Shown: piece by piece, positions 5,723-20,050 of the stretch
Numbering within the stretch: the stretch's first letter is position 1
How the letters are laid out: each line of letters begins with the position of its first letter
Sequence record: NC_021531.1
Length of the DNA: 64,000 bases
Reading direction: 5' to 3' (one strand)
Made by a program: the position numbers and the translations under genes
The notes under the pieces: generated by a model
Told to the model about the DNA's origin: nothing
The model's input: the letters and a program-made list of their open reading frames with translations, nothing else
Databases searched by the model: none

Positions 5723-5778
5723 AAAGAAAAAAAGAACTACTCTCCCCAACGGGAGAGTAGTTACTTTATTTTTTTTTA
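5721..5778. terminator. Bidirectional intrinsic terminator between convergent genes
   Basis: AACTACTCTCCC-caac-GGGAGAGTAGTT stem with an A-tract on the left and a T-tract on the right. Confidence 0.85.
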
Positions 5779-6318
5779 CACGACAGCTGACCCCACTACT
5801 CCTTTAAAGCCGTCGAGCTCACCGTCGGTTGTGCTGAGGTCGGTTTTAACGATCTCCTGCGTAACCATATACGTTGCCAGTACACCCGGAAGGTATTTGA
5901 TGTTGCCATCTTTGACGCTGACAGTGATAACCTTCACACCGTCTTCACCGTCAGTGCGGTCGATAGTCAGCTCGCTCAGCGCAAACGCATCTTGCGTTCT
6001 ATCGGCGGCTATGACTTCGGCGTTAACGAATGCCAATACCTCTTCGTCGGTGTCCCAGTCTGCCAGGTCATCCGTTACTGGTTTATCGACAACGAAAGTG
6101 GGGGCCAGACGGGTGTAGTGCAGTTCTAGCGCACCGGTGAAGTGGACACTTTCTGCTTTCGCGGTGATGGTCAGTTTGCTGTTACGGCCAGCACTGCCAC
6201 CTTCCAGAGTTGCAACTGCACCAAAGTCAACATCAGCAACAGTCAATGCCTGCGCCAGAGAAGAGTTTTTAGTGTTAAACAGTGCAACCAACTGCTCTTT
6301 AAAAGATTTAATTGCCAT
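5776..6318 (-). CDS. Virion structural protein
   Basis: 180 aa, SD-like GAGGGA. HFTGALELHYTRL domain shared with ORFs 69 and 2249. C-terminal DLSTTDGELDGF. Confidence 0.7.
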   Translation of the reverse strand: MAIKSFKEQLVALFNTKNSSLAQALTVADVDFGAVATLEGGSAGRNSKLTITAKAESVHFTGALELHYTRLAPTFVVDKPVTDDLADWDTDEEVLAFVNAEVIAADRTQDAFALSELTIDRTDGEDGVKVITVSVKDGNIKYLPGVLATYMVTQEIVKTDLSTTDGELDGFKGVVGSAVV

Positions 6319-6363
6319 GATGCAAATCCCTCAGTTAACTGGTGGGTTGACGTACCTCGTCAT

Positions 6364-6403
6364 AAGAAATTAAAGAACCGCTATCCCCGTAAAGAGATAG
6401 CGG
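6364..6403 (-). terminator. Probable intrinsic terminator after the peptidase gene
   Basis: CCGCTATC/GATAGCGG stem followed on the minus strand by TTCTTTAATTTCTT. Confidence 0.6.
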
Positions 6404-6408
6404 CGCGA

Positions 6409-6933
6409 CTACAGGTGCTGAACCAATTTATTCCACTCAATCGGCTTCTGCTTAATCACCGTAACCACCCCACGGGTGGGCGACCACACAGTTAAGTCCG
6501 GCTGATTACGCACATCGAAATGGAACCAACTGATGTCGGTTTCAAGGAAGTGAATGAACGGGAACTCATTCGGGTTTTGTTGGATATACGCACGAACAGC
6601 TTGCGGGGTATAGTGCTGGAAGGTTAAGTCCATCGCACCGCCGTATTTGTGCATGCTGTCAGAGCTCGCGTAAAGCTCCAGGGCGCGTTCACGGTAATTG
6701 CCGCCCTTCGGTTGCTCTTGATTGATAAAGAACTGTAGCGTGCGTAAGGAGCGCTGTGTCATGCCTTTAGAAGGCGAGTTCACAATAATCGGTCCGAACT
6801 TGTTACGTAATTGCTGTAACGTAACCATTACCAGTGGGTTGATAATGTACGCAGCGTTAGCACCACGACGTTTAATGACATCGGGCGGCATCAGCTCTTC
6901 GAGTTTAAACTGGTTGGGGTTTGGCTGAAACAT
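6409..6933 (-). CDS. Peptidase M15-like zinc peptidoglycan peptidase
   Basis: SMHKYGGAMD (HxxxxxxD) and WFHFDVR motifs, plus TLQQLRNKFGPIIVNS. Start reassigned to MFQPN (6933), which has an AGGAG SD. Confidence 0.75.
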   Translation of the reverse strand: MFQPNPNQFKLEELMPPDVIKRRGANAAYIINPLVMVTLQQLRNKFGPIIVNSPSKGMTQRSLRTLQFFINQEQPKGGNYRERALELYASSDSMHKYGGAMDLTFQHYTPQAVRAYIQQNPNEFPFIHFLETDISWFHFDVRNQPDLTVWSPTRGVVTVIKQKPIEWNKLVQHL

Positions 6934-7597
6934 TCGTCTCTCCTGCGACTGGAATCGGGTACGTGAGGAACGCACGTTTAATGTTTAGGTAATGCACGTG
7001 AGCTTGCTGGTTGGTACGCACCATGGTCATATCTTGCGCGGGGATACCAACTGTTGGGAACTCACGAACAAACTCGTAATTGGCGTTCATGTTAAACGTG
7101 TACGCATTCGGCTTAAAGTAAATACATCCTTTGTTGTCATCAATAAACGACGTCAACCCAAAATGCTTTACTGCCAAATAAAAGGACTGTCGCGTAATCC
7201 AGTTCACGCCTAGTGCTTTCATGGCATACAAGAACATCCGGTCAGCAAAGTTCTTGTCAATCATGGCGTTCAATTTACCCGCCCCGTCGTTGTGGTAGTA
7301 ACCAATGATAGGGATTTTCTGATACAGCAAATCGTGCAACGCGGCAGCCGGGCCGTAATCACCTTCCGGTTTAAACAGAAACTGTAGCTGTGTGGGAATA
7401 GACGCTAAATCGGTTACAAACCCTTTCGGGGCAACCAAATATAAAGGCTTGTCGGCGCTCAGACCGGTTTCCTTTAAAATGACCTCGAGACGTGTCGGGT
7501 CGTCCTCATACAGACCAGCCAATGTAAAACCGAAGGTGTAGTCTTTCGTTAAGATAAACCACTGCTTATCCAAACGACAATACTCAAACTTGTCCAT
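6905..7597 (-). CDS. DUF1353 family protein
   Basis: PKGFVTDLASIP, AAALHDLLY and ADRMFLYAMKALGV motifs. Start MDKFEY (7597) with an AAGGA SD. Confidence 0.8.
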   Translation of the reverse strand: MDKFEYCRLDKQWFILTKDYTFGFTLAGLYEDDPTRLEVILKETGLSADKPLYLVAPKGFVTDLASIPTQLQFLFKPEGDYGPAAALHDLLYQKIPIIGYYHNDGAGKLNAMIDKNFADRMFLYAMKALGVNWITRQSFYLAVKHFGLTSFIDDNKGCIYFKPNAYTFNMNANYEFVREFPTVGIPAQDMTMVRTNQQAHVHYLNIKRAFLTYPIPVAGETNVSAKPQPV

Positions 7598-7629
7598 TAT
7601 GGTTATCCTTCGATTATTAAGGGGGGTCA

Positions 7630-7665
7630 TAAAAAAAGAACAAAGGTGTGCCCCGAAGGGCACAC
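7630..7665 (-). terminator. Intrinsic terminator closing the radical-SAM cassette
   Basis: On the minus strand: GTGTGCCC-TTCG-GGGCACAC then CTTTGTTCTTTTTTT (C-UUCG-G tetraloop). Confidence 0.9.
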
Positions 7666-7668
7666 ACT

Positions 7669-8325
7669 TTACAGCTCAGTTACAAACGTTGCTTTTAAAC
7701 CTTTGAGAGCGGTGTAGTCTCCGTTCTCAGCAGCAATCCGCGCAGTCTGTTTAAAGTCCGTCAGCTTTTCATGCAATGCGTTGGTGCGTGCAACGATAGC
7801 TTCATTCAACGCTTTCAATTCATCCAGCGTGAAATCGAACTTCGCGTTGTTAGCATCCACCCAGTAACCCGGGCTTTGTTCAGTGCTCAGGTAACGCTGA
7901 ATAGCTGCCAGCGCCTTTTCGTCAGTTTGGTAATTGCGCCCTTTAAACTCAAGAGGAGCAACCACCGCTTCACTGTACGCCTGATTTACCCAGCTGATTA
8001 ACTCAGTCAGTAAGCCATAGCACTTGCCGCGCGTAGAAGAACGCTCTGCCTTATGCTCGGCCAAATCAACGCCCAGCACTTCAGAGACGAACTTGTGCGC
8101 CGCTTTAATGGTGAACTTCACTTCTAACGGAGAAAGACCCTGAGTTGTCAAACCTGCGCTTAACTCTTCATCAGTCATCCCGTCCAGCAGGCGGTAGTGT
8201 GCCAGGCGCGCGAGCGTAGGGTTCCACGTCGCATCACTCAGTTCACCATCGACAAACTGTCCATGACGGTCCACCAGTTTACCGCTGTTATAGAAGCGGT
8301 CCTTTATTTCGCTATTACTAAGCAT
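7669..8325 (-). CDS. DUF4376-domain protein (tail-fibre assembly chaperone-like)
   Basis: C-half EFKGRNYQTDEKA..YWVDANNAKFDFTLDELKALNEAI matches the DUF4376 pattern. Overlaps the upstream gene by 22 nt. Confidence 0.7.
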   Translation of the reverse strand: MLSNSEIKDRFYNSGKLVDRHGQFVDGELSDATWNPTLARLAHYRLLDGMTDEELSAGLTTQGLSPLEVKFTIKAAHKFVSEVLGVDLAEHKAERSSTRGKCYGLLTELISWVNQAYSEAVVAPLEFKGRNYQTDEKALAAIQRYLSTEQSPGYWVDANNAKFDFTLDELKALNEAIVARTNALHEKLTDFKQTARIAAENGDYTALKGLKATFVTEL

Positions 8326-8867
8326 TCAGTTTTCCCCACGATGCCAATGTCTCTCAGCAGACCGTAGTCGAGGAATTGGTAGTCCCGGGCCAAGTCATAC
8401 TGCCAGACAAGATTGTTAACCTTTTTGTCGTCTGGGGTTTCAGTGGCCTCATTGAAGACACCAACCAAATCCCAGCACTCGAAATAGTTACACTGTTCCT
8501 GAGCATGACGAACAATCTTAATTTTGTTGTTCGGGAACGACTGCGCCAGAGCCACCAGAGAACCGATGCCCTTACCGTGTTTGGTACGATAAAGGATGGT
8601 CATCTTGGTCGCAGGCGTATCGAGGATACGCTGCTCCAGACCGGTGTTGCGCAGCTCAGCGTTAGCCAGTGAGTTATGGCCTTCTTCCACGCAGTCCAGC
8701 TCAACCATCACGTTCAGAGAATGACGGATCACCAGCTTCTTCACTGTTTCCGTGTAGTTCTCTGCTTTACACAGCAAAGACACGTCAAACAGTTTGTGCT
8801 TAGACAGGAACGCGTCAAGCAGCGTGGTATCAAGCCTCGTAAAATTGTGAATTAGCAATGACTTCAT
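8304..8867 (-). CDS. Hypothetical protein, probable accessory factor of the CXXX/radical-SAM cassette
   Basis: 187-aa ORF overlapping both neighbours. No recognised motif. Confidence 0.6.
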   Translation of the reverse strand: MKSLLIHNFTRLDTTLLDAFLSKHKLFDVSLLCKAENYTETVKKLVIRHSLNVMVELDCVEEGHNSLANAELRNTGLEQRILDTPATKMTILYRTKHGKGIGSLVALAQSFPNNKIKIVRHAQEQCNYFECWDLVGVFNEATETPDDKKVNNLVWQYDLARDYQFLDYGLLRDIGIVGKTECLVIAK

Positions 8868-10188
8868 TGGTCTTTTCCTGAGATTTGTGTGCGTGAGGTT
8901 GTTCGTGCGTTACTGGTTCTGCAATTGCAGGCTTGGCCAGCTTAGGCAGTTTGTTTTCCTGCGAGGCGCGAACACGGCAGTCATAGCAGTTACAGGTCAG
9001 CTCTTTGAACTGATTACCGTAAGAACCAAAACGACGTTCCCACCACTGTGCAGTTAACAGTTTAGCCGTAGTCCAACCGCACTGACGACGTTCGCCGTGA
9101 TACTGCTTACGTGCTTCTTCTTCACCGTCGCCATTTTCATACGCGGCAGCTACGCAAGATGCACAGATGTGTTTCGCTGGGCAGCCCATACAAGCGTCTG
9201 GGTAAGACTTCCACTGAGTCTTAACTTCTTCCAGCAGTTTGCCGCCGTCGGTGTTAACGATTTCACGACCAACAAGCTTAGCAATTGCCTGACGGGTGGT
9301 TACCGTAGACATGAAGCGGTTACAGCCGTAGATGTTACGGTCGAAGCCGAGACAGGTCATGTGAACGGTCGTACCGCAGTGTGGGCGCAGACGGTCTGGG
9401 TTATAACGTACCTGATCGTCGTGCAACAGTTTTTCACGCCAGTCTGGGTTCCACAGGTCATCGACGTTCATACCGTTTGGAGTGATGTGCCCCATTTCAG
9501 CAGTCGGGTCTAAGTGCAGCCCTTTACCAATCCAGTATTCCAACACTTCAATCATCTGGTTAGAAATACCCAGCGCCATGTCACGAGGAATGATATCTTC
9601 AAATACCATGTTCCCGTAGATGGTACCACCGCCCGATTGGTCGATTAACGACTTCATGGATGCAGCGTAATGCTTGAGCGTGTCGTGGGTAAAGGTCGCT
9701 TTGATACCGAGGTCGTTAATCTTCATCGACTTCAGATAGTGATACCCTTCCAGCGCTTTCTCGTACGAGCCTTTGCGCGAGGTAGTGAAGATACGGTGTT
9801 TGTCATGCGTCTCCGGCAGACCATCAATCGATACGCCGATAGAGAGACGCTTATACCAGCGCTCGATAATAGAACGGTTCAGCGGCTTATCAAACAGCGT
9901 GCCGTTGGTGGAGATAGAGAACATGTACGGGCGGTTATCCCGCGCCGCCAGCTCTTCTGCAGTTTCGAACGCTGCAATCAGCAGCTTCGGCTGCAGGAAC
10001 GGCTCACCACCGATGATATCGATGATAGCACCATCCACACCCGGCTTACCTTTATCGCGGTCAAAGCAGGCATGGATAAAGTCAACCACGTCTTCAACGC
10101 GGTTGTTACGCGGGAACTTGCGCTCGTAGCAGTAATCGCAATCGAGGTTGCAAGACAGGTTGGTAACTATTTGGTACGTTACGTCCAT
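8830..10188 (-). CDS. Radical SAM/SPASM peptide maturase (CXXX-repeat target type)
   Basis: CNLDCDYC triad, IIGGEPFL, ISTNGT, VSIDG. SPASM cysteines CGTTVHMTC..YGC and CMGC..HICASC..RQC. Extra CNCYDC near the C-terminus. Confidence 0.92.
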   Translation of the reverse strand: MDVTYQIVTNLSCNLDCDYCYERKFPRNNRVEDVVDFIHACFDRDKGKPGVDGAIIDIIGGEPFLQPKLLIAAFETAEELAARDNRPYMFSISTNGTLFDKPLNRSIIERWYKRLSIGVSIDGLPETHDKHRIFTTSRKGSYEKALEGYHYLKSMKINDLGIKATFTHDTLKHYAASMKSLIDQSGGGTIYGNMVFEDIIPRDMALGISNQMIEVLEYWIGKGLHLDPTAEMGHITPNGMNVDDLWNPDWREKLLHDDQVRYNPDRLRPHCGTTVHMTCLGFDRNIYGCNRFMSTVTTRQAIAKLVGREIVNTDGGKLLEEVKTQWKSYPDACMGCPAKHICASCVAAAYENGDGEEEARKQYHGERRQCGWTTAKLLTAQWWERRFGSYGNQFKELTCNCYDCRVRASQENKLPKLAKPAIAEPVTHEQPHAHKSQEKTNEVIANSQFYEA

Positions 10189-10198
10189 AATGGCCGCC

Positions 10199-11074
10199 TT
10201 ATGCTTGTGGCAAATTCAGGTAGTTATGCAGATACTTGTAAGCATCCACGCCGATGATAGAGGCTATTTTATTACAGCCTGAGTCCACTAACCATTCCGT
10301 GTTCTCACGCAGCCCAATATCCCCATTCGGTTCAACCATCTTCAGCTGACCACATGCGTTACAGTTCATGTTATCGAAGAACTTCTCTAAACGCAGTACC
10401 GTCGAGTAACCGTTCGCCGCGTTCATCTCAAACATCTGGGCTTCGAGCCGTTTCCATCCGTAGATGAAGTTCAGCACGTGGTCCTGATTGAGAGGTTTCG
10501 GCATTAACTTGTCGAACGTCAGCGATAACGCCGCCAAGTTAAGATGATGCAGAGAACTGTGCAGTTGAAGGATGTCTTCGTACCAGCGAGGTTTACTCAC
10601 CATCTCACGCGTCAATACGCCCCACACAGTAACCTTTTCCAGCTCATTGATTACTTCAAAAGCCTCTTGAGCACCTTCGTCAATGAATGCACGCAGGCTA
10701 CGCTCACCACCTTCGTACGCATCGATAGACACGACGATATGGTCAAACGTTTTCAAGAACTCAAGTTGCGACAACTTGAGTTTACGACCGTTGGTGAATA
10801 GCAGGTGTTTTGCGGAAGGAGCGCCACGCCGTGCTTCTTCAACGAAGTCAACCAACTTCGAATAGGAGAGCAGCGGTTCGCCACCAGTCCACAGGAATTC
10901 CTCTACCAGAGGATTTTCTTTTATAATGTCCACCATTGCCTCTTTATGTTTTGTTTTAGAGACATCGCCCTTAGCCATGTGAGCTGCCCCTCCACAGAAG
11001 GAGCAGTTTAAGTTACACTTAGCCGTTATTGCAACGTCAATCATCGTTGCGGATGATTTAGGGGTATCGTGCAT
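10199..11074 (-). CDS. Second radical SAM enzyme (short, Twitch-like C-terminus)
   Basis: CNLNCSFC triad, TGGEPLL, LFTNG, VSIDA. C-terminal CNACGQLKMVEPNGD..GC. Confidence 0.88.
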   Translation of the reverse strand: MHDTPKSSATMIDVAITAKCNLNCSFCGGAAHMAKGDVSKTKHKEAMVDIIKENPLVEEFLWTGGEPLLSYSKLVDFVEEARRGAPSAKHLLFTNGRKLKLSQLEFLKTFDHIVVSIDAYEGGERSLRAFIDEGAQEAFEVINELEKVTVWGVLTREMVSKPRWYEDILQLHSSLHHLNLAALSLTFDKLMPKPLNQDHVLNFIYGWKRLEAQMFEMNAANGYSTVLRLEKFFDNMNCNACGQLKMVEPNGDIGLRENTEWLVDSGCNKIASIIGVDAYKYLHNYLNLPQA

Positions 11075-11999
11075 CCGGATTTTTTCCCCATTGCTTGCTC
11101 ATAAACGAGAAGAGCGGGTCATCTTTACGAACATCTTCGCCGGGAACAATGAGTTTCGGGTCATTATACGCCTGCAGGATGGCGTCTAAGATTTTATTCC
11201 GGCTATTGATTCCGTTAAGTTCTTTCAAACTTACTTCACGGCGGATGAACGAGTCCATTACATGCTGCTCTTCGTCCGAAAGGAGACCGGCCTCGTTGAC
11301 TTTACCCACCAAGAAGGTCATTACTCGGTGCAAGTCAGCTGTGGTATTCGGTTGCTCCCCGTACTCGCTTTGAATCAGGTAGTTCGTCCACGGTTTGCGC
11401 AGTCGCTTGGTAATCTCGTGTGCATCCGTAATCGCTTCCCATCTCATACTACGATGGTTCCACGTAATTTTATACGAATACGCCATGAGGTCAGCCAGCG
11501 TATCGATGCCGAGTTCTTCGTAACCATCGACCGCATAGTAGCGTTCGGTATTGAAGTAATCGTCATCTGGCACTTCATCGCAGTCAACAACGGTGTAGTA
11601 GAACGGGAAGGCTGATGGGTATTCCCAGTTCCAGCCGCGTTGAATCATCGGCTTCATGTTGTTTTCTTTAAACGATGCAAACAGCAGCTCCAGCGGTGGA
11701 GCGTAGTTAAGTACCGCATCGGTAAAGTAGTATTTGTCGTTCACTAATTTACCGACGTAGTCTGTCGTCGCACCGGTACACTTGATGATTTTCACATTCA
11801 GTGTGTCAGAGATGTTGAACTCTTCCAGTACCGTTGACTTATACAGAATGTCGCGAGGACGCAGACGTGGGAACTCAACCGGGTTCATTGCCAGCAAACG
11901 CAGACGGTCATTGACGTGGTCATTAACCGCGTCAGGTAGCCCGATGTGAATCGGGTAGTTGAATGTAGTTCGGAATGCGTAATGCGCATTACTCTTCAT
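11058..11999 (-). CDS. Hypothetical protein in the radical-SAM cassette
   Basis: 313 aa, strong SD AAGGAG, overlaps the rSAM gene by 17 nt. Confidence 0.7.
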   Translation of the reverse strand: MKSNAHYAFRTTFNYPIHIGLPDAVNDHVNDRLRLLAMNPVEFPRLRPRDILYKSTVLEEFNISDTLNVKIIKCTGATTDYVGKLVNDKYYFTDAVLNYAPPLELLFASFKENNMKPMIQRGWNWEYPSAFPFYYTVVDCDEVPDDDYFNTERYYAVDGYEELGIDTLADLMAYSYKITWNHRSMRWEAITDAHEITKRLRKPWTNYLIQSEYGEQPNTTADLHRVMTFLVGKVNEAGLLSDEEQHVMDSFIRREVSLKELNGINSRNKILDAILQAYNDPKLIVPGEDVRKDDPLFSFMSKQWGKNPDARYP

Positions 12000-12010
12000 G
12001 AAAGAACTCC

Positions 12011-12220
12011 TTACGAAGGCCAGGTCACAGCTTTCGCGCCACCTGAAGACGTCCAGCTACAACTACCATTACAACGATAGCTGCCTGCTGCAATATTGTT
12101 TAAACGATTGGAGTTATTAACGGTACCGCGGGTAGCAATGTAGTTAATCGCACTAGCGGTGGTGATATAACCCTCAATCCTCGCGAGTTGCTGTCCAACC
12201 TCGTTTAATGAAACAGCCAT
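12011..12220 (-). CDS. MAVSLN-leader peptide C (short core CNGSCSW)
   Basis: 69 aa, SD GGAGG. Leader homologous to peptides A and B. Confidence 0.8.
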   Translation of the reverse strand: MAVSLNEVGQQLARIEGYITTASAINYIATRGTVNNSNRLNNIAAGSYRCNGSCSWTSSGGAKAVTWPS

Positions 12221-12232
12221 GTGACCTCCCTA

Positions 12233-12634
12233 CTACGGTCCAGAACAGCCGGAACAACCCCCAGAACATGACCCGGAACAGTTACCAGAGCATCTGCCTG
12301 AACACGTACCAGTACACGTACCAGAACACGTACCAGAACACGTGCCTGTGCAACCACCGGAACAACCACCCGCGCAACCACCTGAACAGCTCGACGAACA
12401 GCTAGAGCCACAGGTTGCACTACAGGTTCCGGTACAGCCGCCAGAACAGCCTGCGGAGCAAGTCCAGCTACACGTACCTCCGCAGTGGTAATAGTTCGCG
12501 TCATGACCTGCTAAGCGGTCTACGTTATTGGTAGTCTTGCCCGCAATGTACGATTGGACACCGGCTTCGGTTTTCAGAGCAGCGGCTTCAATGTTGTCCA
12601 GTTGGCCTTTTACAGCGTTTAATGAGACTGCCAT
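12233..12634 (-). CDS. MAVSLN-leader CXXX-repeat peptide B (putative rSAM substrate)
   Basis: 133 aa from MAVSLN (SD GAGGGG), 21 Cys in CXXX repeats, ends CSGP. Confidence 0.88.
   Translation of the reverse strand: MAVSLNAVKGQLDNIEAAALKTEAGVQSYIAGKTTNNVDRLAGHDANYYHCGGTCSWTCSAGCSGGCTGTCSATCGSSCSSSCSGGCAGGCSGGCTGTCSGTCSGTCTGTCSGRCSGNCSGSCSGGCSGCSGP
12301..12348. repeat. Four near-perfect tandem 12-bp units (AACACGTACCAG) inside peptide B
   Basis: aacacgtaccag / tacacgtaccag / aacacgtaccag / aacacgtgcctg. Confidence 0.85.
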
Positions 12635-12645
12635 GGTAATCCCCT

Positions 12646-13038
12646 CTATTGTGGCCCCGAACATCCGCCTGAGCAACTTCCTGAGCAGTTACCTGAACAC
12701 GCCCCACCACAACTCCTGCCACAAGCACCAGAACATGATGAAGAACACGCGCCGCCGCACGTACCCGTACAGCTACCTGAGCAACCTCCCGAGCAAGAAC
12801 TAGTACACGTGCCAGAACATGACCCGGAGCAGTTACCGGAGCAGCTGGAACAACCGTGGGAACAACCTGAAGAACAAGACCAACTACAACTACCGTTGCA
12901 GCGGATTTCTCCGGGGGACATCCCGCCTAAATTATTTGCGTTATACGCTTTTGTGGCCACCTGTCCATCAACCGAAGCGCCAGTTGCAATAGACAGTCTG
13001 GCCATACGCGCATTAACGTCATTGAGTGAAACGGCCAT
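12646..13038 (-). CDS. MAVSLN-leader CXXX-repeat peptide A (putative rSAM substrate)
   Basis: 130 aa, SD AAGGA, 21 Cys in CXXX repeats, ends CSGPQ. Confidence 0.88.
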   Translation of the reverse strand: MAVSLNDVNARMARLSIATGASVDGQVATKAYNANNLGGMSPGEIRCNGSCSWSCSSGCSHGCSSCSGNCSGSCSGTCTSSCSGGCSGSCTGTCGGACSSSCSGACGRSCGGACSGNCSGSCSGGCSGPQ

Positions 13039-13051
13039 ATGCTTCCTTTAA

Positions 13052-13079
13052 CGGGCGAACTTGACATAAAGTATCGCCC
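13052..13079 (-). promoter_or_regulatory. Inverted repeat enclosing a TATG late-promoter-like motif upstream of the peptide genes
   Basis: GGGCGA...TCGCCC arms around CTTTATGTCAAG (minus strand; TATG at 13068-13065). Confidence 0.4.
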
Positions 13080-13093
13080 TGACGTTATAAGAG

Positions 13094-14293
13094 TTACTTG
13101 GTGCCGGCAGCAGACTGAACGTCGCCGCGGGTAGTCAAGTTGGCGTTGACGTGTACGTTGGCTTGTACGACACCACCCGTGTTCTTGTTCAGATACTGGT
13201 CGTGCGGGTTCGCCGCCGATTTGTGGGCTGCGAGGTCAGCGTTGGTTTTCGCCAATGCCTGTTCCAAGGCCGCGATGCGATTTTCGAGACCTTGGTTCGC
13301 TGTGCCCATATCCGCAATCTGCTGCTTCAGGTTATTGGTTTCCTGATTAGCGGCTGCGAGTCCAGCACGCAGGTCATTGAGCTGCTGAGTCAGCAGACCG
13401 ACTTGCGTTTCCAGAATGAGAATCTCATCCATCAGTTCCGCAATCTGTAACTGCGTTTTCTGATAGTTCTGGTCAACCGTGTTGAGCTGGGTATTCCATG
13501 TGCCGATAGAACTGACCAGCGCTGCGATTTTCTGCGCCAAGTCGGTATCGGTCGCATTGAGCGTACCGATATCTTGCAACACGGAGTTGATGCTGCTTTG
13601 CACGTTCTGAATCAACGTACGGACTTCTGACGTGGAGTACACGTCAAGTTGGCCACGCGTCACTTTGTGAACGTTGCCTTCCGCATTACGGTGCTCATCT
13701 AACGCCGCCAGCATCTCTTGACGATACGCTTTGAGCATGTTCTGAATCTGCACCATTTCCGCAGACGCGCCCAAACGAATCGCTTCGTTGAGTTTCGCCA
13801 GCAGGGTAACGATGTATTCAAAACCAAAGAAGTCGCCCACGTCACGGAACGCAGGCGCACCTGCAAACTCATCCGGCACGTTACGGAGTTCATAGAAGTC
13901 GATAGTTGGGTCATCGAGTTCCAGTGATTCAATACACTGGACGATGTTATCGACGTTCGCTGCGTACGGACCACCGACAATGTGGGCGCTGGCGGTGATG
14001 TCGGACGGTACAGCCGAGCGAGTAACAACAATAGCAGTTGCCACTTCGCGGCCACCGGTCATTTTAGTCAATGACGGATGGAGGAGAATTACTTCGTAGT
14101 CGGTACCGCGAACGAGTGGTTTATTCGGCGCGTTCACCGGAGCTAATCGAAGCGTATCAACAAAGAAAGGACCTGTTGGGAATGCAAACGCCCGGTTAAT
14201 CGTTCCTGTGCCGAGTTTAATCGGGTGAGAAACGTTGTTACCGAGGATGGTTCCGAACAGGTCCAACGGGTACTGCATTACTGCCTTACTCAT
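13094..14293 (-). CDS. Virion/tail-fibre-associated protein with coiled-coil C-half
   Basis: 399 aa. N-domain homologous to the N-termini of the three giant fibres (LVRGTDYEVI). Heptad repeats. H..NPH motifs. Confidence 0.7.
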   Translation of the reverse strand: MSKAVMQYPLDLFGTILGNNVSHPIKLGTGTINRAFAFPTGPFFVDTLRLAPVNAPNKPLVRGTDYEVILLHPSLTKMTGGREVATAIVVTRSAVPSDITASAHIVGGPYAANVDNIVQCIESLELDDPTIDFYELRNVPDEFAGAPAFRDVGDFFGFEYIVTLLAKLNEAIRLGASAEMVQIQNMLKAYRQEMLAALDEHRNAEGNVHKVTRGQLDVYSTSEVRTLIQNVQSSINSVLQDIGTLNATDTDLAQKIAALVSSIGTWNTQLNTVDQNYQKTQLQIAELMDEILILETQVGLLTQQLNDLRAGLAAANQETNNLKQQIADMGTANQGLENRIAALEQALAKTNADLAAHKSAANPHDQYLNKNTGGVVQANVHVNANLTTRGDVQSAAGTK

Positions 14294-14317
14294 CGGAAAA
14301 CTCCTTGTGGTGAGTAA

Positions 14318-14347: not shown

Positions 14348-17300
14348 TTACGCGCTCAGGGTGGAATCATGAATCATAACATCAAGGACAACCGCGGTAG
14401 TCGCATCGTAGTAGATGTCGATATACCGGCCTCCTGCGAAGCTACGTTCCTCCGTCCAGAACATCACTGGGGCTTTGGTAATGGCTGCAGACTGACGCAG
14501 GGCCAGCATGTAGTCTTTACCCGTAGGCACGGTCAACGTGTACAGGCCGATAGCAGCACTGCCCGGAATAGAAGCAGGGGAAGCCGGGTTGGGTAACTTA
14601 ATCGCACCTAATGACGTACTTGAGGTAGCGAGTTTCGTTGTCCCATCCTGCACTAATTCAAACGCCACATACGTCGGTGAATTACCTGGATTTTCTCTTA
14701 CGACAAGCGCCAACGAGTTGGCTTGATTCAGCAACGCCCCGGTCAGTGTAACCGTTTGCGTAGCTGATGCGTTGTACGTAGTAGTCCCCTGCAACACACC
14801 GTTCAGGTATACACTACAACCGTCGTCGCTATTCACATTCAACATTAAAGAGTTGCTTGTTGGTGTGAAAGTTGTTTTTACAGCGAACACCTCGCCCGCT
14901 GCCAACAACTGAGCATATGGGCGAATCGCTGGCGATGCTAACGGACTGCTATACGCGTTGGTCGTCTGCATTGCAGGTGGCCACAGCTTTTCAGCATTGT
15001 TAGCTAGCAACATCCACGACGCGGTTATCGCAGGCAGGCTCACACGAGTGATGTTATCGAAGTTACCGGCGAGCTGGTTCGCTGTTTCCAGCGCCGCAGC
15101 AGTGCCGTAAGTCTTCGACAAATCCGCCCCCGGACGGGTGATGTTCCAGAATCGTGCCGCGTTTTGAGATGTAGCCCCGTAGCCAAAACGACAAGTGCGG
15201 GCAAATGTCGGGGCTGCAGTGGCCAAGTCAATCTCAACGTATTTGTACGTTGCAGAGTTACGCACCTGGCTCATCGACAACGTTTTCTTCGCCGCCACGA
15301 TTTGTCGGATGTTCGTGTCACGATCACCGGTTGTTGGCAATTGTGCATGTTCAACCGCAATATACAGCATGTTACCGCGCCGTTCAGCGTAGACATGCGC
15401 ATACCACTTATTCCACCCCAGTAAATCGGTGGTCGAAGTGTCTAAGGTGGCGATCGCCCGAGAAGATGACTGTCGGTAGTTTTCCTTAACCTGTATCCGA
15501 GACTGTAAATCAAGGTGCCCCTCGATTGAGTTACCGATAGCTAAGCAAAGCGTTTGTTCGCGCCCTACCGACGAATCTTCCTTCTTCAACGCAGCCAGCA
15601 CAATCGCGATGGCATCATTATCAGTGTCGTTAGAAGTGATAACCGTGTTAAACGTGTAATCACCAACCAGTTCATCCGAAATAAACCCAACGAACGTCAC
15701 TGTGTTCAACGTACATTCAACCACATCATCCGCGTCGATATATTTCCATGCTACGAGTTCAGACTCGTTTGCAGGCTGGGCCGACGTCGAGTTGTTGTGA
15801 CTGAAACGGTACCAGCTGTTGTAGATATCCTGGAACGACGGGAATGAGAACGTGTCGATGGTACCCATGTTCTCCATGTTCGAGTAGATAGACTCGGTCA
15901 AGGTCCCGCCTGCCAGATATCCGTGCGCGTACGGGTTGTCCGCGTGCGCCAACAGAGAACCAACTCGACCCAAACGTTTCACACGGTTGATGTTGACTTC
16001 AACGATAGCGTTAGTCGACGTCACCACGTACCCGATATAGAGGCGCGTAGCAGTGTCGCTAAGCAACGTTTTGGAAACGCTGTACTCTGCCTTACCTTGT
16101 GCGTTTAACTGCACGTAGAAGTACAGTGTGGCGTTCTGGTAGTCGCTTGGGAACAACGCTTTGAAGTCAAATTGCGAGGCTGGCGTATTGTGCTCTTCCA
16201 TGTTCGCAAAGAACGGAATGTCCTGCGTAATGTAAAGAATCATCCCCTCGGCCAGCTGTGGTCCGAACAGGATCACGTTACGTGCACTGCCAGTGTTGTA
16301 ATTACGACTGTTGTTGCTAAATGCTTGACCGCCGTAATACATCCCACCAGACAAGAACGTACCAACCAGAATCTCGTTCGTTTCAGGCAGATGGACAACG
16401 TCGCTTTCGCCATAGGACGGGTTAACCATTTCTCGGTTAAACGTCCAGTTTGCCATGTTCGCATCGCATGTCAACGTGAAGGTCATGTGACCCCCGCCAC
16501 CGACAGTCGCACAATGACATTGCGCATGAGGACGGATAATCCATCCGTCACTGCGTTTAATTAAACGCAGCTGCCAGTAATCCCCTGCATTGCTGATACC
16601 CGTCCACGCGAAATCGATACGGTCTTCGTTACCAATGTGCACCGCGTTGCTGTAATCCAGCGCCAGTACGTTGTTAACGAAGGTCATTGGGATGCGGAAA
16701 TAGTAGACGTACGCATACGTGACACCGTCCGCTTCTTTCTGACCAAACATCGCCGTAGCGATACACATGTTTGTACCGCCCAAATCAAACAGGTTTAACC
16801 AGCTTGTTTTGAAGATACTCGCCGCTTGTCCCCACTTCGCCACACGGGTCGTCAGCATCGACTGGAAATCATTCCACATCGCAGCATTAACAGTCACTGT
16901 GTCGTTGTGCAGCACTGCAGAACCGTTAATGTTTTTGTAATTACTGCTCCCAGCGGAGTTAAAAGCGGCCCCGTTGAGGTAATTACTGTTGCCGTTGAAG
17001 ATGTAGGCACAGCGGGTTAACACGTTGTACGTTGACTCGTTAAACGCGGTACGGTCATTCGAAGGACCCCAACCACCATAGCCCGGGAAGTTGTAAGAGC
17101 CTGCGGTGTCGTAAGCTATCTGGGCGCAATCGCTGGTACCCAGACGGCGCATCAGCACCTTTTTAACCGTGTTACCCAGCTGCACTAAACCACGCATGCG
17201 ATGTTGGTACACTGAGCCGTACGCCCCGTTTACTGCCATCTGGACACCCATCCGCCCGGTCAGCGGATTATCCCAACGCAGCGCATCGTACAACGACTTG

Positions 17301-20050
17301 CCGTTAAGACTGATACGCACACACTGGTTGTCACTGTTACTGTTGTCGTTACCGATACAGTCAATGTAACCAGCGCGGGGTGCGGTGGAGATGATCATAT
17401 TCCCGTAGAGGAAACCGTCAGAGTTGTCGGTGTGGTAATTCCCACCATTATCGGTGACACCGTTCTCGTCGAGTTTCATCGGCAGGTAATCGTTATCCAG
17501 TACCGCAGTCTTCGCATCGAGGTCGATAACGAAAGAAATCTGCCAGCGGGTACCGAAAGCAGTTGCGGAGTTCGAAACGTGTGTACTACAGTTTCCACGC
17601 ACACGAATCTTACGACCATTACGTCCAAGCATCCAGTTGCGACGTGCAGAGTGCACCACGTTGCGCGCACCTGTCCACTTCGCAGCACCCGCATCGGTGA
17701 TGTAGTAGAGGCTGGTCGTGGCCGGGTCTTTCGTATTCAGCGCATAGGTCGCAAAACGACCCACGTTACCATCGGCGTGTTTACCGGTCAGTTTGACAGA
17801 CTGGAACTGTACGTCTGTCTTACTGAGATCGTCTTTGCTGATAGACCACAGGCACGTAAAGAACTCCGTGTTGGTCAACGTGCTCTTAATGACATAGATG
17901 TCGTTATCGATAACCATCAGATAATCATCACTCGGTGTCGGAGCGAAGTTATACTGATTGGTTGCCCGAGGGGTCGGGGAATATGTCACACGAACGATGT
18001 CGGTATGCTTCGCAGCATCCGCACTACCGTTAAACATCACCAGATAGTAACGGTCGTCTGTGCCTAAGAAGATAGCACAGTCGTCGCCACAAACCACCAC
18101 GCGTTTAAGCTCAATACCCGGATACTTCTTCGCCATCCCCGCAGGAACGTACTGTACTGCTGTGGCCACATAATTCGAGGATAGGTTATTGGAACCCGCT
18201 TCGAACTCACGGTACCAATAGAACACGCGCTGCGAATCAGCATAACCGTCCCAACCGTTACGCAGAATGTAGAGACGGTTGTCTTGTTCAATCTGCATCG
18301 CGTTAAAGTTAGCATCGATCACAGACGCTGTCCCTTCATACTGCCCCATTGTTGGGATAGGCAGGAACCCGGAATCACCGTAGTAGGTGCTGTTCGCCAC
18401 CCAGCTCGGTAGCAGGTTCAGTGCTTTGTCTTCCGCAGCATCGATATCCAGTTTTAACTGGTAACCGAGTTTGGAGACCGCCGCTTTATTAGTCGTGGCA
18501 TCCAGCACCGTATACAGATACGTTAAGCCGGAAACCGTCGGCGAGGCAGTGGGTACGTTTTGCAAATCACTGGCAGTATGCGTGTGAACCTTCAGCGCTT
18601 TGTTGGTCAGCGCATCACGGAACGGCTGATGTACAGGCTTATCGGCGGGGGCGGTGTTGTTGACTTTATCCAGACCGAAAGACGCTGCGGTCAAGTTAAT
18701 CGTCTGCGTTGCACCGAAAGACGCTCCGTTGATTTTGAACGTCTCATCAACGTAGTTATTCAGTTTCAGCAACAGGTTGTTCACCCCTTTCTGCGAGAGC
18801 GCATAATTCGGAGCAATAACCTCAACACTGTCCGTCAGACGGAACAGGCCCTCAGTCGTCAGGGTCGCTGCCGGAGGGTTAGCCGTCATGTTTAACGGAG
18901 AGGCCTGTGAACCGTTACCACCCATACGCACCGTGTCAGTCGACTTAAAGGTCGGCTGCGCGTTGGAGTTCAGAGGGGCATACAAGTACAACCCTACTGA
19001 GTCAGGAGTAATCAAGAACGCACCGTTATAAATCGGACGGACGTCTTTGGCACCGGTTGCATTACCTTTGGACGGAACGAACAGCTCATCGTAACCCGCA
19101 CGTGAGGAAACCCCAATACCGCGCTGGTTATTATCGCTGTCAGCAGCCAGTTCAATCACCGCTTCTGTTCCGGTCAGGAGAATCTTACCCGCACTAAAGC
19201 GCAGGGCGGATTTCCCGTCTTGGGTCGCGTACACCACTTCGTCATTGTTAATCGCTTTGAAACGACCGAACACCTGACCCATGGTGTCATCAATCAACGT
19301 ATCGACGATACGCTGAGAGATTTTATTCTCGACCATAATCGCTACTAACTGCGCCAGCGTCTTACTGAACGCTTTGATGGCATTCGTAGCAGCATCACCT
19401 ACACCTAACGCCCCAATTTGGGCAGGGGTGTATTTGTGCTGATGTGGCGTTTTGTGGTGCTGTAACAGTTTGTCTGCATACAGTTTGTTCGCTGCGCGAG
19501 AGAGCGCCTTAATAGCCGTATCGATTTCAGTATCAAGCTGGCCGGCTTTCTCTTCGAGCTTTAAACGGATGTTGTTGATGGCTGCCGCAACCTCATCACG
19601 CGCAATGGCCTCGTCGATATTCGTCGGCGGGTCAATAGGCTCGATGGGAATTTGGTAGCGCATCAATGCTGACCAATCGATGTTGCGTGGTTCGGTCAGG
19701 TCGGGGTTAACGAGGAACTTGCCGATATCCGATTCAGGAACGGAATAAGACGAGCCGAGCACCTGCAGCTTATAGGTAATCTCGGTTTTCGTCAGCAGCA
19801 TTATCCCGCCGAAAAGCTGGGCATTCGCGGCGTGTGCACCGGCAGAGTAATACAACGCGAGGTAATAGTCGATACCTTCAAATAACAGATTCCCCGCCGT
19901 ATCTTTAATCTCTAATCCGTTACGAAAGAAGGGTGCCTCGAAAGGCACCACTAAGTTGAAACGGTTAGGATAAGTCGACGTACTGAGGGAACCTTCCGCG
20001 ATGTTATCGGGGCTTGTACCCGTCAAATCTTCGGGATAATGTTTTCTCAT
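14348..20050 (-). CDS. Giant tail-fibre-like virion protein (1900 aa)
   Basis: Fibre-type motifs HHKTPHQH, GLDKVNNT..DKPV, HTH, AT.T..G...L. Beta-rich distal domains, including SDDGCSVYLNG (jelly-roll/carbohydrate-binding type). Confidence 0.75.
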   Translation of the reverse strand: MRKHYPEDLTGTSPDNIAEGSLSTSTYPNRFNLVVPFEAPFFRNGLEIKDTAGNLLFEGIDYYLALYYSAGAHAANAQLFGGIMLLTKTEITYKLQVLGSSYSVPESDIGKFLVNPDLTEPRNIDWSALMRYQIPIEPIDPPTNIDEAIARDEVAAAINNIRLKLEEKAGQLDTEIDTAIKALSRAANKLYADKLLQHHKTPHQHKYTPAQIGALGVGDAATNAIKAFSKTLAQLVAIMVENKISQRIVDTLIDDTMGQVFGRFKAINNDEVVYATQDGKSALRFSAGKILLTGTEAVIELAADSDNNQRGIGVSSRAGYDELFVPSKGNATGAKDVRPIYNGAFLITPDSVGLYLYAPLNSNAQPTFKSTDTVRMGGNGSQASPLNMTANPPAATLTTEGLFRLTDSVEVIAPNYALSQKGVNNLLLKLNNYVDETFKINGASFGATQTINLTAASFGLDKVNNTAPADKPVHQPFRDALTNKALKVHTHTASDLQNVPTASPTVSGLTYLYTVLDATTNKAAVSKLGYQLKLDIDAAEDKALNLLPSWVANSTYYGDSGFLPIPTMGQYEGTASVIDANFNAMQIEQDNRLYILRNGWDGYADSQRVFYWYREFEAGSNNLSSNYVATAVQYVPAGMAKKYPGIELKRVVVCGDDCAIFLGTDDRYYLVMFNGSADAAKHTDIVRVTYSPTPRATNQYNFAPTPSDDYLMVIDNDIYVIKSTLTNTEFFTCLWSISKDDLSKTDVQFQSVKLTGKHADGNVGRFATYALNTKDPATTSLYYITDAGAAKWTGARNVVHSARRNWMLGRNGRKIRVRGNCSTHVSNSATAFGTRWQISFVIDLDAKTAVLDNDYLPMKLDENGVTDNGGNYHTDNSDGFLYGNMIISTAPRAGYIDCIGNDNSNSDNQCVRISLNGKSLYDALRWDNPLTGRMGVQMAVNGAYGSVYQHRMRGLVQLGNTVKKVLMRRLGTSDCAQIAYDTAGSYNFPGYGGWGPSNDRTAFNESTYNVLTRCAYIFNGNSNYLNGAAFNSAGSSNYKNINGSAVLHNDTVTVNAAMWNDFQSMLTTRVAKWGQAASIFKTSWLNLFDLGGTNMCIATAMFGQKEADGVTYAYVYYFRIPMTFVNNVLALDYSNAVHIGNEDRIDFAWTGISNAGDYWQLRLIKRSDGWIIRPHAQCHCATVGGGGHMTFTLTCDANMANWTFNREMVNPSYGESDVVHLPETNEILVGTFLSGGMYYGGQAFSNNSRNYNTGSARNVILFGPQLAEGMILYITQDIPFFANMEEHNTPASQFDFKALFPSDYQNATLYFYVQLNAQGKAEYSVSKTLLSDTATRLYIGYVVTSTNAIVEVNINRVKRLGRVGSLLAHADNPYAHGYLAGGTLTESIYSNMENMGTIDTFSFPSFQDIYNSWYRFSHNNSTSAQPANESELVAWKYIDADDVVECTLNTVTFVGFISDELVGDYTFNTVITSNDTDNDAIAIVLAALKKEDSSVGREQTLCLAIGNSIEGHLDLQSRIQVKENYRQSSSRAIATLDTSTTDLLGWNKWYAHVYAERRGNMLYIAVEHAQLPTTGDRDTNIRQIVAAKKTLSMSQVRNSATYKYVEIDLATAAPTFARTCRFGYGATSQNAARFWNITRPGADLSKTYGTAAALETANQLAGNFDNITRVSLPAITASWMLLANNAEKLWPPAMQTTNAYSSPLASPAIRPYAQLLAAGEVFAVKTTFTPTSNSLMLNVNSDDGCSVYLNGVLQGTTTYNASATQTVTLTGALLNQANSLALVVRENPGNSPTYVAFELVQDGTTKLATSSTSLGAIKLPNPASPASIPGSAAIGLYTLTVPTGKDYMLALRQSAAITKAPVMFWTEERSFAGGRYIDIYYDATTAVVLDVMIHDSTLSA

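Follow-up and report, generated by a model that had tools for sequence, protein, structure and literature searches.

The system of Cys-Xaa-Xaa-Xaa (CXXX) repeat target proteins and their radical S-adenosylmethionine (SAM) maturases (TIGR04114/PF27846 and TIGR04115) has been defined by bioinformatics, and we know of no published biochemistry for it. The literature library searched contained no paper on CXXX-repeat biochemistry, on radical-SAM-modified phage fibre proteins or on the phage genes described here. Three tandem genes, pepA, pepB and pepC (CR5_156), were analysed in a window of 64,000 nucleotides from sequence record NC_021531.1. The source is Cronobacter phage CR5 (genus Derbicusvirus), a jumbo myovirus with a genome of 224 kb; a window position equals the CR5 record position minus 124000. 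The chances were judged to be about even that pepA, pepB and pepC are tail-fibre-module proteins of the CXXX family with a front part that is retained as a stem, and not precursors of released peptides.

The three genes are arranged head to tail on the minus strand with intergenic gaps of 11-12 nt (coordinates in Table 1). An earlier note on this DNA, made from the sequence alone, had claimed that all three proteins start with MAVSLN in different synonymous codons and that each gene has its own ribosome binding site. This was confirmed. The codons read ATG GCC GTT TCA CTC AAT, ATG GCA GTC TCA TTA AAC and ATG GCT GTT TCA TTA AAC, exactly as quoted, and Shine-Dalgarno-like purine-rich sites (AAGGAAG, GAGGGG and GGGAGG) were found 3-7 nt before each start. 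A scan for promoters and terminators gave a number of sites that was not above that of shuffled sequence. The cysteine spacing in the arrays of pepA and pepB is 4, with one spacing of 3, and their count of 21 cysteines is kept in two Erwinia phages. pepC contains one C-x-x-x-C-S-W (2 cysteines in total) followed by a conserved 13-residue tail. The motif C-(N/G)-G-(S/T)-C-S-W is common to all three proteins.

pepA and pepB scored 31.5 and 33.7 bits against TIGR04114, the NCBIfam model for Cys-rich repeat radical-SAM targets, and both pass its cutoff of 20; no TIGR04114 match was obtained for pepC. All three proteins matched phrog_6085 (E 5e-35 for pepA, 9e-38 for pepB and 2e-23 for pepC), and PF27846 (tSAM_targ_Cxxx_rpt) is carried by most of the metagenomic homologues. 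The region 8800-14300 of the window matches CR5 with 100% identity and the Erwinia phages EarlPhillipIV and Derbicus with 77% identity. The 46-50 residues before the array are under strong purifying selection: the ratio of nonsynonymous to synonymous substitution rates (dN/dS) towards the Erwinia-phage orthologues was 0.04-0.17, with synonymous sites near saturation, and the constraint on this part is at least equal to that on the array. pepC is 87% identical over its full length in the Erwinia phages, and the possibility that it is a decayed copy was rejected on the grounds of full-length conservation and purifying selection. The set of three genes, two long and one short, was found in all SPN3US-like genera examined (Derbicusvirus, Wellingtonvirus, Machinavirus, Erskinevirus and Seoulvirus) and also, short third paralogue included, in an unrelated metagenomic phage contig (L013). 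A back-translated DNA pattern gave 48 stretches in IMG/VR; the real ones came from jumbo-phage relatives only, and the others were out-of-frame chance matches. A tblastn search of phages with the homologue P0006 gave no matches. In a metagenomic protein of 187 amino acids (aa), P0142, a front part like that of pepA and the first portion of an array are joined to a fragment resembling a bacterial solute-binding protein; P0142 is probably an assembly chimera.

Front part of the three proteins

The earlier note had seen a resemblance of the front part to phage fibre shafts, had suggested that this part may be kept as a trimerising stalk by which the modified core docks onto a fibre, and had proposed a profile search as a check. 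A profile of the pre-array regions of pepA, pepB and pepC was searched against 1.84 billion representative proteins. The 23 hits consisted of 20 family members and three large proteins from outside the family, P0140 (445 aa, 6 matched stretches, E 3.9e-5), P0141 (1746 aa, 16 matched stretches, E 5.6e-5) and P0145 (648 aa, 5 matched stretches, E 4.1e-4). In all three, profile positions of about 9-47 align to a tandem unit of ~38 residues, and two units of P0145 share 43% identity with the pepC segment across 35 residues. The C-terminal domain of P0145 recurs in pelagiphage genes of the tail region and in a phage gene that bears the annotation 'c1q globular head like', and P0141 is encoded among phage structural genes (Peptidase_S74, T4 gp13-like and phiTE_241_C). 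No radical-SAM neighbour was present for these fibre proteins in the gene lists of the loci L065 and L066, which shows that the motif exists independently of the enzymes. Reciprocal searches with P0140, P0141 and P0145 ranked pepC or pepB first among the 363 open reading frame (ORF) segments of the window (E 0.006-0.035). A hidden Markov model (HMM) of 30 repeat units, run over the same segments, also placed pepB first (E 0.0029). Residues of about 14-48 are therefore read, with moderate confidence from sequence comparison, as one copy of a fibre shaft repeat, most strongly for pepB and pepC. Each of the three proteins has a single shaft-like unit within its 69-133 aa, and tandem repetition as in the fibre proteins was not seen.

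The interpretation of the note was supported in part, and several results count against the resemblance. The repeat-unit HMM was not significant for pepC (E 0.82) or pepA (E 2.5). The significance of the profile search is a sum of weak repeat matches in sequence rich in N, A, T and S, in which single units score only 9-21 bits. No solved fibre structure was matched by the pre-array profile in the PDB, where designed coiled coils at non-significant E values were the only matches, and no shaft-like unit was found in the 399-, 1900-, 1340- and 1208-aa proteins of the window itself. Low unit scores, the failure to recover pepA reciprocally and the lack of PDB fibre matches would all be expected if the likeness were compositional or convergent and the pre-array part were a family-specific N-terminal domain with no fibre ancestry. 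This was nevertheless considered very improbable, because each of the three hits outside the family, out of 1.84 billion proteins, has many tandem stretches that match, and the match is to one contiguous unit of 32-39 residues in register. Two of the three, P0141 and P0145, moreover have a phage fibre or structural context, and the longer relatives described below are independent evidence of a fibre context.

The shaft-like segment is preceded by a helix, which the note had described as an amphipathic heptad and as a coiled coil. Among 25 family members the share of hydrophobic residues was 0.96-1.0 at positions 5, 8, 12 and 15 and at most 0.16 in the columns between them. AlphaFold2 on pepB (23 sequences) predicted helices at residues 5-20, with a predicted local distance difference test (pLDDT) score of about 72-77, and at residues 23-32. 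The amphipathic helix is real, but it extends over only about two heptads and the term coiled coil overstates it.

The junction between front part and array is conserved. As had been claimed, pepA, pepB and pepC all contain an N-x-x-x-L-x-G...Y segment as well as C(N/G)G(S/T)CSW, and in pepB the form N-N-x-x-x-L-x-G-x-x-x-x-Y-Y stands directly before the first cysteine. C51, C55 and S56 are invariant in the 25 sequences, and G43 and W57 are conserved in at least 90% of them. The further statement that no Gly-Gly motif lies at the junction was correct only in part. pepA has Gly-Gly (L-G-G) seven residues before its first cysteine, and the dipeptide also occurs in some pepB orthologues. It is not conserved, being A-G, N-N, S-G or N-G elsewhere; in the 25 sequences only the second glycine (G43) is conserved and the residue before it is G, A, S, N or D. 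Model searches among the cassette and neighbouring genes found no C39-type peptidase. A double-glycine leader is recognized by a conserved G-G/A/S together with a C39 peptidase, and neither was found here.

Conservation and helicity of the N-terminus bear on the question of whether pepA, pepB and pepC are precursors of classical RiPPs (peptides synthesized ribosomally and modified post-translationally). The front part would then be an enzyme-guiding leader that is cut off, and the cross-linked cores would be free peptides (antimicrobial, metal-binding or host-manipulating), either released at lysis or acting intracellularly. This was regarded as unlikely. The tandem, small, precursor-like genes do lie directly upstream of a radical-SAM/SPASM enzyme with PapB, TIGR04115 and PDB entry 5wgg as its best matches, but the cores, at ~80 residues with 21 cysteines, are far above the typical core size, and no protease, C39 transporter or RiPP recognition element (RRE) was found in the cassette or its neighbours. 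The helical, conserved N-terminus has a leader-like length and in pepA the Gly-Gly stands seven residues before the array; yet pepC is conserved while being nearly without a core, the pre-array segment resembles a structural fibre repeat, and the genes, with their 11-12-nt gaps, stand within a late structural gene string. The homologous 'leader' is, in addition, internal in relatives, where it follows tail-fibre-like domains of 100-290 residues.

Longer relatives and genomic settings

The comparison of homologues covered the best 120. About 23 of these share the junction N-x-x-x-L-x-G-x-x-x-x-x-Y-x-C-x-x-x-C-S-W with the CR5 proteins. In the junction-sharing relatives the pre-array part ranges from 49 to 155 residues (median 118), and in the locus L016 it reaches 289; of the pre-array part, the final 50 residues are the ones that align with the CR5 front part. 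Position 5 of the phrog_6085 profile falls on residue 92 of P0017 and position 8 on residue 96 of P0012, so that the segment which forms the front part in CR5 is internal in these relatives. The N-termini of P0017 and P0012 match phrog_5073, 'tail fiber protein', and P0017 carries a repeat of the T4-type long tail-fibre proximal subunit (gp34/gp12-type; PDB 9f4a_Le, E 0.0023). Matches of P0017 to T4-like gp34 genes (E 0.4-0.9) were discarded; they span the gp34-type repeat and not the junction motif. When the closer pre-array alignment was used as the query of a locus search, one locus was returned, L016. Its 401-aa protein combines tail-fibre PHROG matches with the same junction and array, and by eye it shows Gly-X-Y tracts of collagen-like appearance. 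The CR5 front part may accordingly be viewed as a minimal version of the longer, fibre-like N-terminal regions of its relatives. Bacterial family members start with a signal-peptide-like sequence, for example P0069 (NCBI: 'Cys-Xaa-Xaa-Xaa repeat radical SAM target protein'). Compared with the fibre-like N-termini of phage members, this indicates that the N-terminal module is exchangeable, and fibre-like in phages.

A second and larger class, about 67 of the best 120 homologues (e.g. P0009-P0013), has an N-terminal domain of ~107 residues and another junction that is without N-x-x-x-L-x-G. One member of this class (L003:6217-6840), in a 45-kb phage contig, adjoins a homologue of the large radical-SAM enzyme. 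In a 222-kb metagenomic jumbo contig with the CR5 gene order (L067, 6001-6633), the pepC orthologue P0136 is 210 aa long, of which 140 residues form a C-terminal extension that matches no family.

Jumbo, T7-like, lambda-like and P2-like phages were all found to have CXXX cassettes within their tail modules. In the T7-like loci L004 and L012, genes for the nozzle, internal proteins and T7-tail adaptor are followed by a small ORF, the CXXX protein and the radical-SAM genes. The lambda-like locus L005 has M, L, K, I and J followed by the CXXX protein and a radical-SAM gene. In the P2-like locus L016 a baseplate wedge, a tail protein and a tail fibre are followed by the CXXX protein, a small radical-SAM gene, a phrog_8030 homologue, a large radical-SAM gene and the tail sheath. 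A portable cassette that occurs in several phage morphotypes, in which radical-SAM enzymes cross-link a Cys-array module that is part of, or docked on, a tail fibre, and in which the CR5 'leader' is a retained stem, was given somewhat less than an even chance. In this reading, the two long paralogues and the short one may together make up a single hetero-oligomeric tip.

The contig L013 holds a complete cassette (7621-12085) with two long peptides and one short, phrog_8030, a small radical-SAM gene, a large radical-SAM gene (51% identical to that of CR5) and phrog_7988.

Enzymes, neighbouring genes and the virion

The features of the locus are collected in Table 1. The order of fibre genes, 399-aa protein, three peptides, phrog_8030, small radical-SAM, large radical-SAM and phrog_7988 is kept in five jumbo-phage genera.

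Table 1. Positions in the window of the three peptide genes, segments of their products and the surrounding genes.
Feature	Position	Strand	Description	Basis
pepA	12646..13038	minus	130 aa; 46-residue pre-array part, then 21-Cys array	ORF call
pepB	12233..12634	minus	133 aa from its ATG; 50-residue pre-array part, then 21-Cys array	
pepC (CR5_156)	12011..12220	minus	69 aa; similar pre-array part, without Cys array	
pepB residues about 15-49	12488..12592	minus	shaft-repeat-like segment	profile search; reciprocal unit HMM, E 0.0029; BLASTP
pepC residues about 14-48	12077..12181	minus	shaft-repeat-like segment	profile search; BLASTP
pepB residues 5-20	12575..12622	minus	conserved amphipathic helix; same residue numbers in pepA and pepC	AlphaFold2 and column hydrophobicity
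313-aa protein (phrog_8030)	11058..11999	minus	conserved cassette member	phrog_8030, E 1e-141
Small radical-SAM enzyme (CR5_154)	10199..11074	minus	291-aa ORF	PF04055 and PF13353
Large radical-SAM/SPASM-type enzyme	8830..10188	minus	452 aa	PapB and TIGR04115 models; 5wgg match
187-aa protein (phrog_7988)	8304..8867	minus	homologue after the large radical-SAM gene in L013	phrog_7988, E 3e-86
399-aa coiled-coil virion protein	13094..14293	minus	virion structural protein; coiled-coil-type matches at residues 180-370	phrog_2163
1900-aa giant fibre/baseplate candidate	14348..20050	minus	upstream neighbour	ORF

The large radical-SAM enzyme is related to known maturases and is not a TIGR04115 or PapB equivalog. 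It scored 117.6 bits against the PapB model (cutoff 340), 112.9 bits against TIGR04115 (cutoff 350) and 46.7 bits against the SCIFF maturase model (cutoff 425), and only the generic Radical_SAM domain passes. Its CxxxCxxC motif is located at residues 13-20. The best PDB match was 5wgg, which we take to be CteB (the search labels it 'Radical SAM domain protein'), with residues 12-172 of the query aligned to 106-265 of the chain. Since the alignment begins at query residue 12 and chain residue 106, the phage enzyme has no counterpart of the N-terminal ~100 residues of the chain. The large enzymes of L012 and L016 are 32-33% identical to that of CR5. No RRE model matched any cassette protein, and an N-terminal RRE-like (PqqD-like) domain is absent from the large enzyme; it is conceivable that the phrog_8030 protein provides an RRE in trans. 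No protease or transporter model passed among the cassette and neighbouring genes, where a sub-threshold Peptidase_M15_3 match on a lysin-like neighbour was the only trace.

Relatives of the small radical-SAM enzyme follow CXXX proteins in L004, L005, L012, L013, L014 and L016. In L012 (9330-11336) the small and the large enzyme are fused into one protein of 668 aa, which suggests that the two act together. The annotated start of CR5_154 (window 10978) would leave out the CxxxCxxC motif, which lies upstream of it. The 291-aa orthologues in the Erwinia phages and L013, and the ORF itself, support a start at 11074 or near 11044, and the likely start is the second ATG, at about residue 11, near 11044.

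Homologues of the phrog_8030 protein were found in L013 (26% identity, E 2e-26) and in L016 (phrog_8030 E 1.2e-5). The 313-aa protein had no Pfam, NCBIfam or PDB match (the best profile match in the PDB, a carboxypeptidase, had E 0.33), and its AlphaFold2 model from six sequences was unusable, with a mean pLDDT of 45.7. The phrog_7988 protein is probably the last member of the conserved cassette. Beyond it, at 5776-8325 on the minus strand, lie genes for DUF4376, DUF1353 (tail assembly chaperone in the record) and DUF7941 proteins together with a weak Peptidase_M15_3-like match, a content that would fit a neighbourhood concerned with fibre assembly and lysis.

Thioether formation is the most plausible chemistry for the arrays, because the large enzyme is PapB/5wgg-like and the substrate is Cys-rich and short-spaced. 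The proposed sequence of events is as follows. A two-heptad amphipathic helix and one copy of a tail-fibre shaft repeat would make up the front part, which would stay on the mature protein and serve in oligomerization, in attachment or docking, or in both. The 21-Cys rear part of pepA and pepB would be the substrate of the two downstream radical-SAM enzymes, which would install many intramolecular thioether-type cross-links and convert it into a rigid, protease-resistant distal module. The phrog_8030 protein probably helps, and it and the phrog_7988 protein could be accessory factors. pepC, with its single C-x-x-x-C, would be a conserved third partner, possibly in a hetero-oligomer. Retention of the front part, the oligomeric state, presence in the virion and the modification chemistry are all points that we infer.

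Upstream of the peptides are the 399-aa protein and the 1900-aa candidate, and further proteins of 1340 and 1208 aa. No Pfam domain was found in any of these four. By gene order and size, the 399-aa protein corresponds to gp167 of phage SPN3US (a 412-aa ORF beside the 5.2-kb gene gp168), and the 1900-, 1340- and 1208-aa proteins correspond to gp168-170. In SPN3US virions gp167 was detected with 25 unique peptides (PMC5694885, supplementary table 1); it is a fairly abundant non-head virion protein whose normalized count is above that of the giant fibre candidates (PMC5694885). gp168-170 are virion proteins as well, and gp168 is listed as a 'baseplate/tail fiber candidate' (PMC5694885). The 399-aa protein is a candidate docking partner. 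Cleavage of the peptides by a prohead protease of the SPN3US type, whose cleavage sites are A-x-E (PMC5694885), was considered and rejected; when the sequences of pepA, pepB and pepC were read by eye, A-x-E sites were absent.

The virion data also bear on whether the peptides and the radical-SAM enzymes are non-virion factors that act only in fibre assembly and might serve the giant fibre proteins as a scaffold, a chaperone or a carrier of metal or iron-sulfur. None of gp161-166 was detected in SPN3US virions (PMC5694885), and gene order places the SPN3US counterparts of the phrog_8030 and radical-SAM proteins in the range gp163-165; the peptides themselves, however, were never searchable in that proteome. 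Downstream neighbours include the 'tail assembly chaperone' of the record (Pfam DUF1353) and the DUF4376 protein, and Cys arrays are plausible as metal ligands. Relatives nevertheless fuse the array to fibre-like N-terminal domains, one of them beside a T7-tail adaptor, which is the architecture of a structural fibre and not of a chaperone. A role restricted to assembly was on balance thought improbable.

The blindness of the virion proteome follows from annotation: the peptide genes are unannotated and thus not in the search databases. pepA and pepB are without annotation in CR5, where a spurious plus-strand coding sequence (CDS), CR5_157 (window 12591-12803), covers part of both. In SPN3US the counterparts of pepA, pepB and pepC are all unannotated and an out-of-frame CDS overlaps pepB, and the records of Phobos, Huxley and Caitlin show opposite-strand ORFs where the peptide genes lie. 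This amounts to a systematic annotation failure that affects CR5, SPN3US and several Erwinia phages: either the Cys-rich genes were overlooked or spurious ORFs took their place.

The reading of pepA, pepB and pepC as tail-fibre-module proteins with a retained stem has further weaknesses. Presence of the three proteins in the virion is conjectural; the SPN3US proteome could not see unannotated genes. The AlphaFold2 monomer of pepB has a mean pLDDT of 50 and its array has no confident fold. A RiPP leader, too, would be a conserved helical N-terminus encoded beside radical-SAM/SPASM genes, and the conserved junction might serve for recognition by an enzyme. In L013 the upstream neighbours of the cassette are a nucleotidyltransferase gene and an Acb2/Tad1-like hairpin gene, not fibre genes.

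If the retained-stem reading is true, peptide natural-product chemistry is used by phages for part of the host-recognition apparatus, and RiPP-type chemistry acts on a virion structural protein instead of a secreted peptide. It would explain the radical-SAM genes inside jumbo, T7-like, lambda-like and P2-like tail modules, and it would give the CXXX-repeat family its first biological setting. Should the front part be cleaved, the locus would still be a phage-encoded RiPP-like system with unusually large substrates.

Comparison with known systems

The earlier note had held that the shared N-terminus is not a classical RiPP leader. The relationship to fibre repeats, the internal position in relatives and the tail-module context agree with this, while the proteins still belong to a radical-SAM target family; to call them 'not RiPP-like' would go too far. 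Their nearest counterpart is the CXXX-repeat system. Like its targets, pepA and pepB have long arrays with a cysteine at every fourth residue that score above the TIGR04114 cutoff, and an adjacent radical-SAM/SPASM enzyme for which TIGR04115 is the second-best model. Unlike it, the CR5 maturase is far below the TIGR04115 cutoff, and the locus has an extra small radical-SAM enzyme, phrog_8030 and phrog_7988. Phage members start fibre-like whereas bacterial members start signal-peptide-like, and pepC is without an array.

The ranthipeptide/SCIFF systems (PapB/freyrasin and CteB) provide the best-scoring models for the large enzyme of CR5, and their substrates are likewise Cys-rich and short-spaced. 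The CR5 enzyme differs in being below the cutoffs and in having no counterpart of the N-terminal ~100 residues of the 5wgg chain. Its substrates have 21 cysteines compared to about 6, no leader protease or exporter was found, and the setting is a phage tail module.

On the structural side, CR5 residues of about 14-48 are in register with one ~38-residue unit of the shaft repeats of P0140, P0141 and P0145; the single CR5 copy contrasts with 5-16 tandem copies, and it is followed by a Cys array and not by a C1q-like head. The gp34/gp12-type repeat of T4 (PDB 9f4a and 9f4b) is a motif that longer relatives carry upstream of the same junction. The glycine-rich distal gp38 adhesins of T-even-like phages offer an analogy of function alone: they too are small and come from genes next to those for fibres, their N-terminal part serves for attachment, and their distal part is repetitive and Gly/Ser-rich. 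A role of this kind is proposed for the CR5 proteins. The searches made returned no match to gp38, and proteins of the gp38 type are not known to have Cys arrays or radical-SAM partners. The CR5 locus is a phage-borne variant of the known but uncharacterized CXXX-repeat system.

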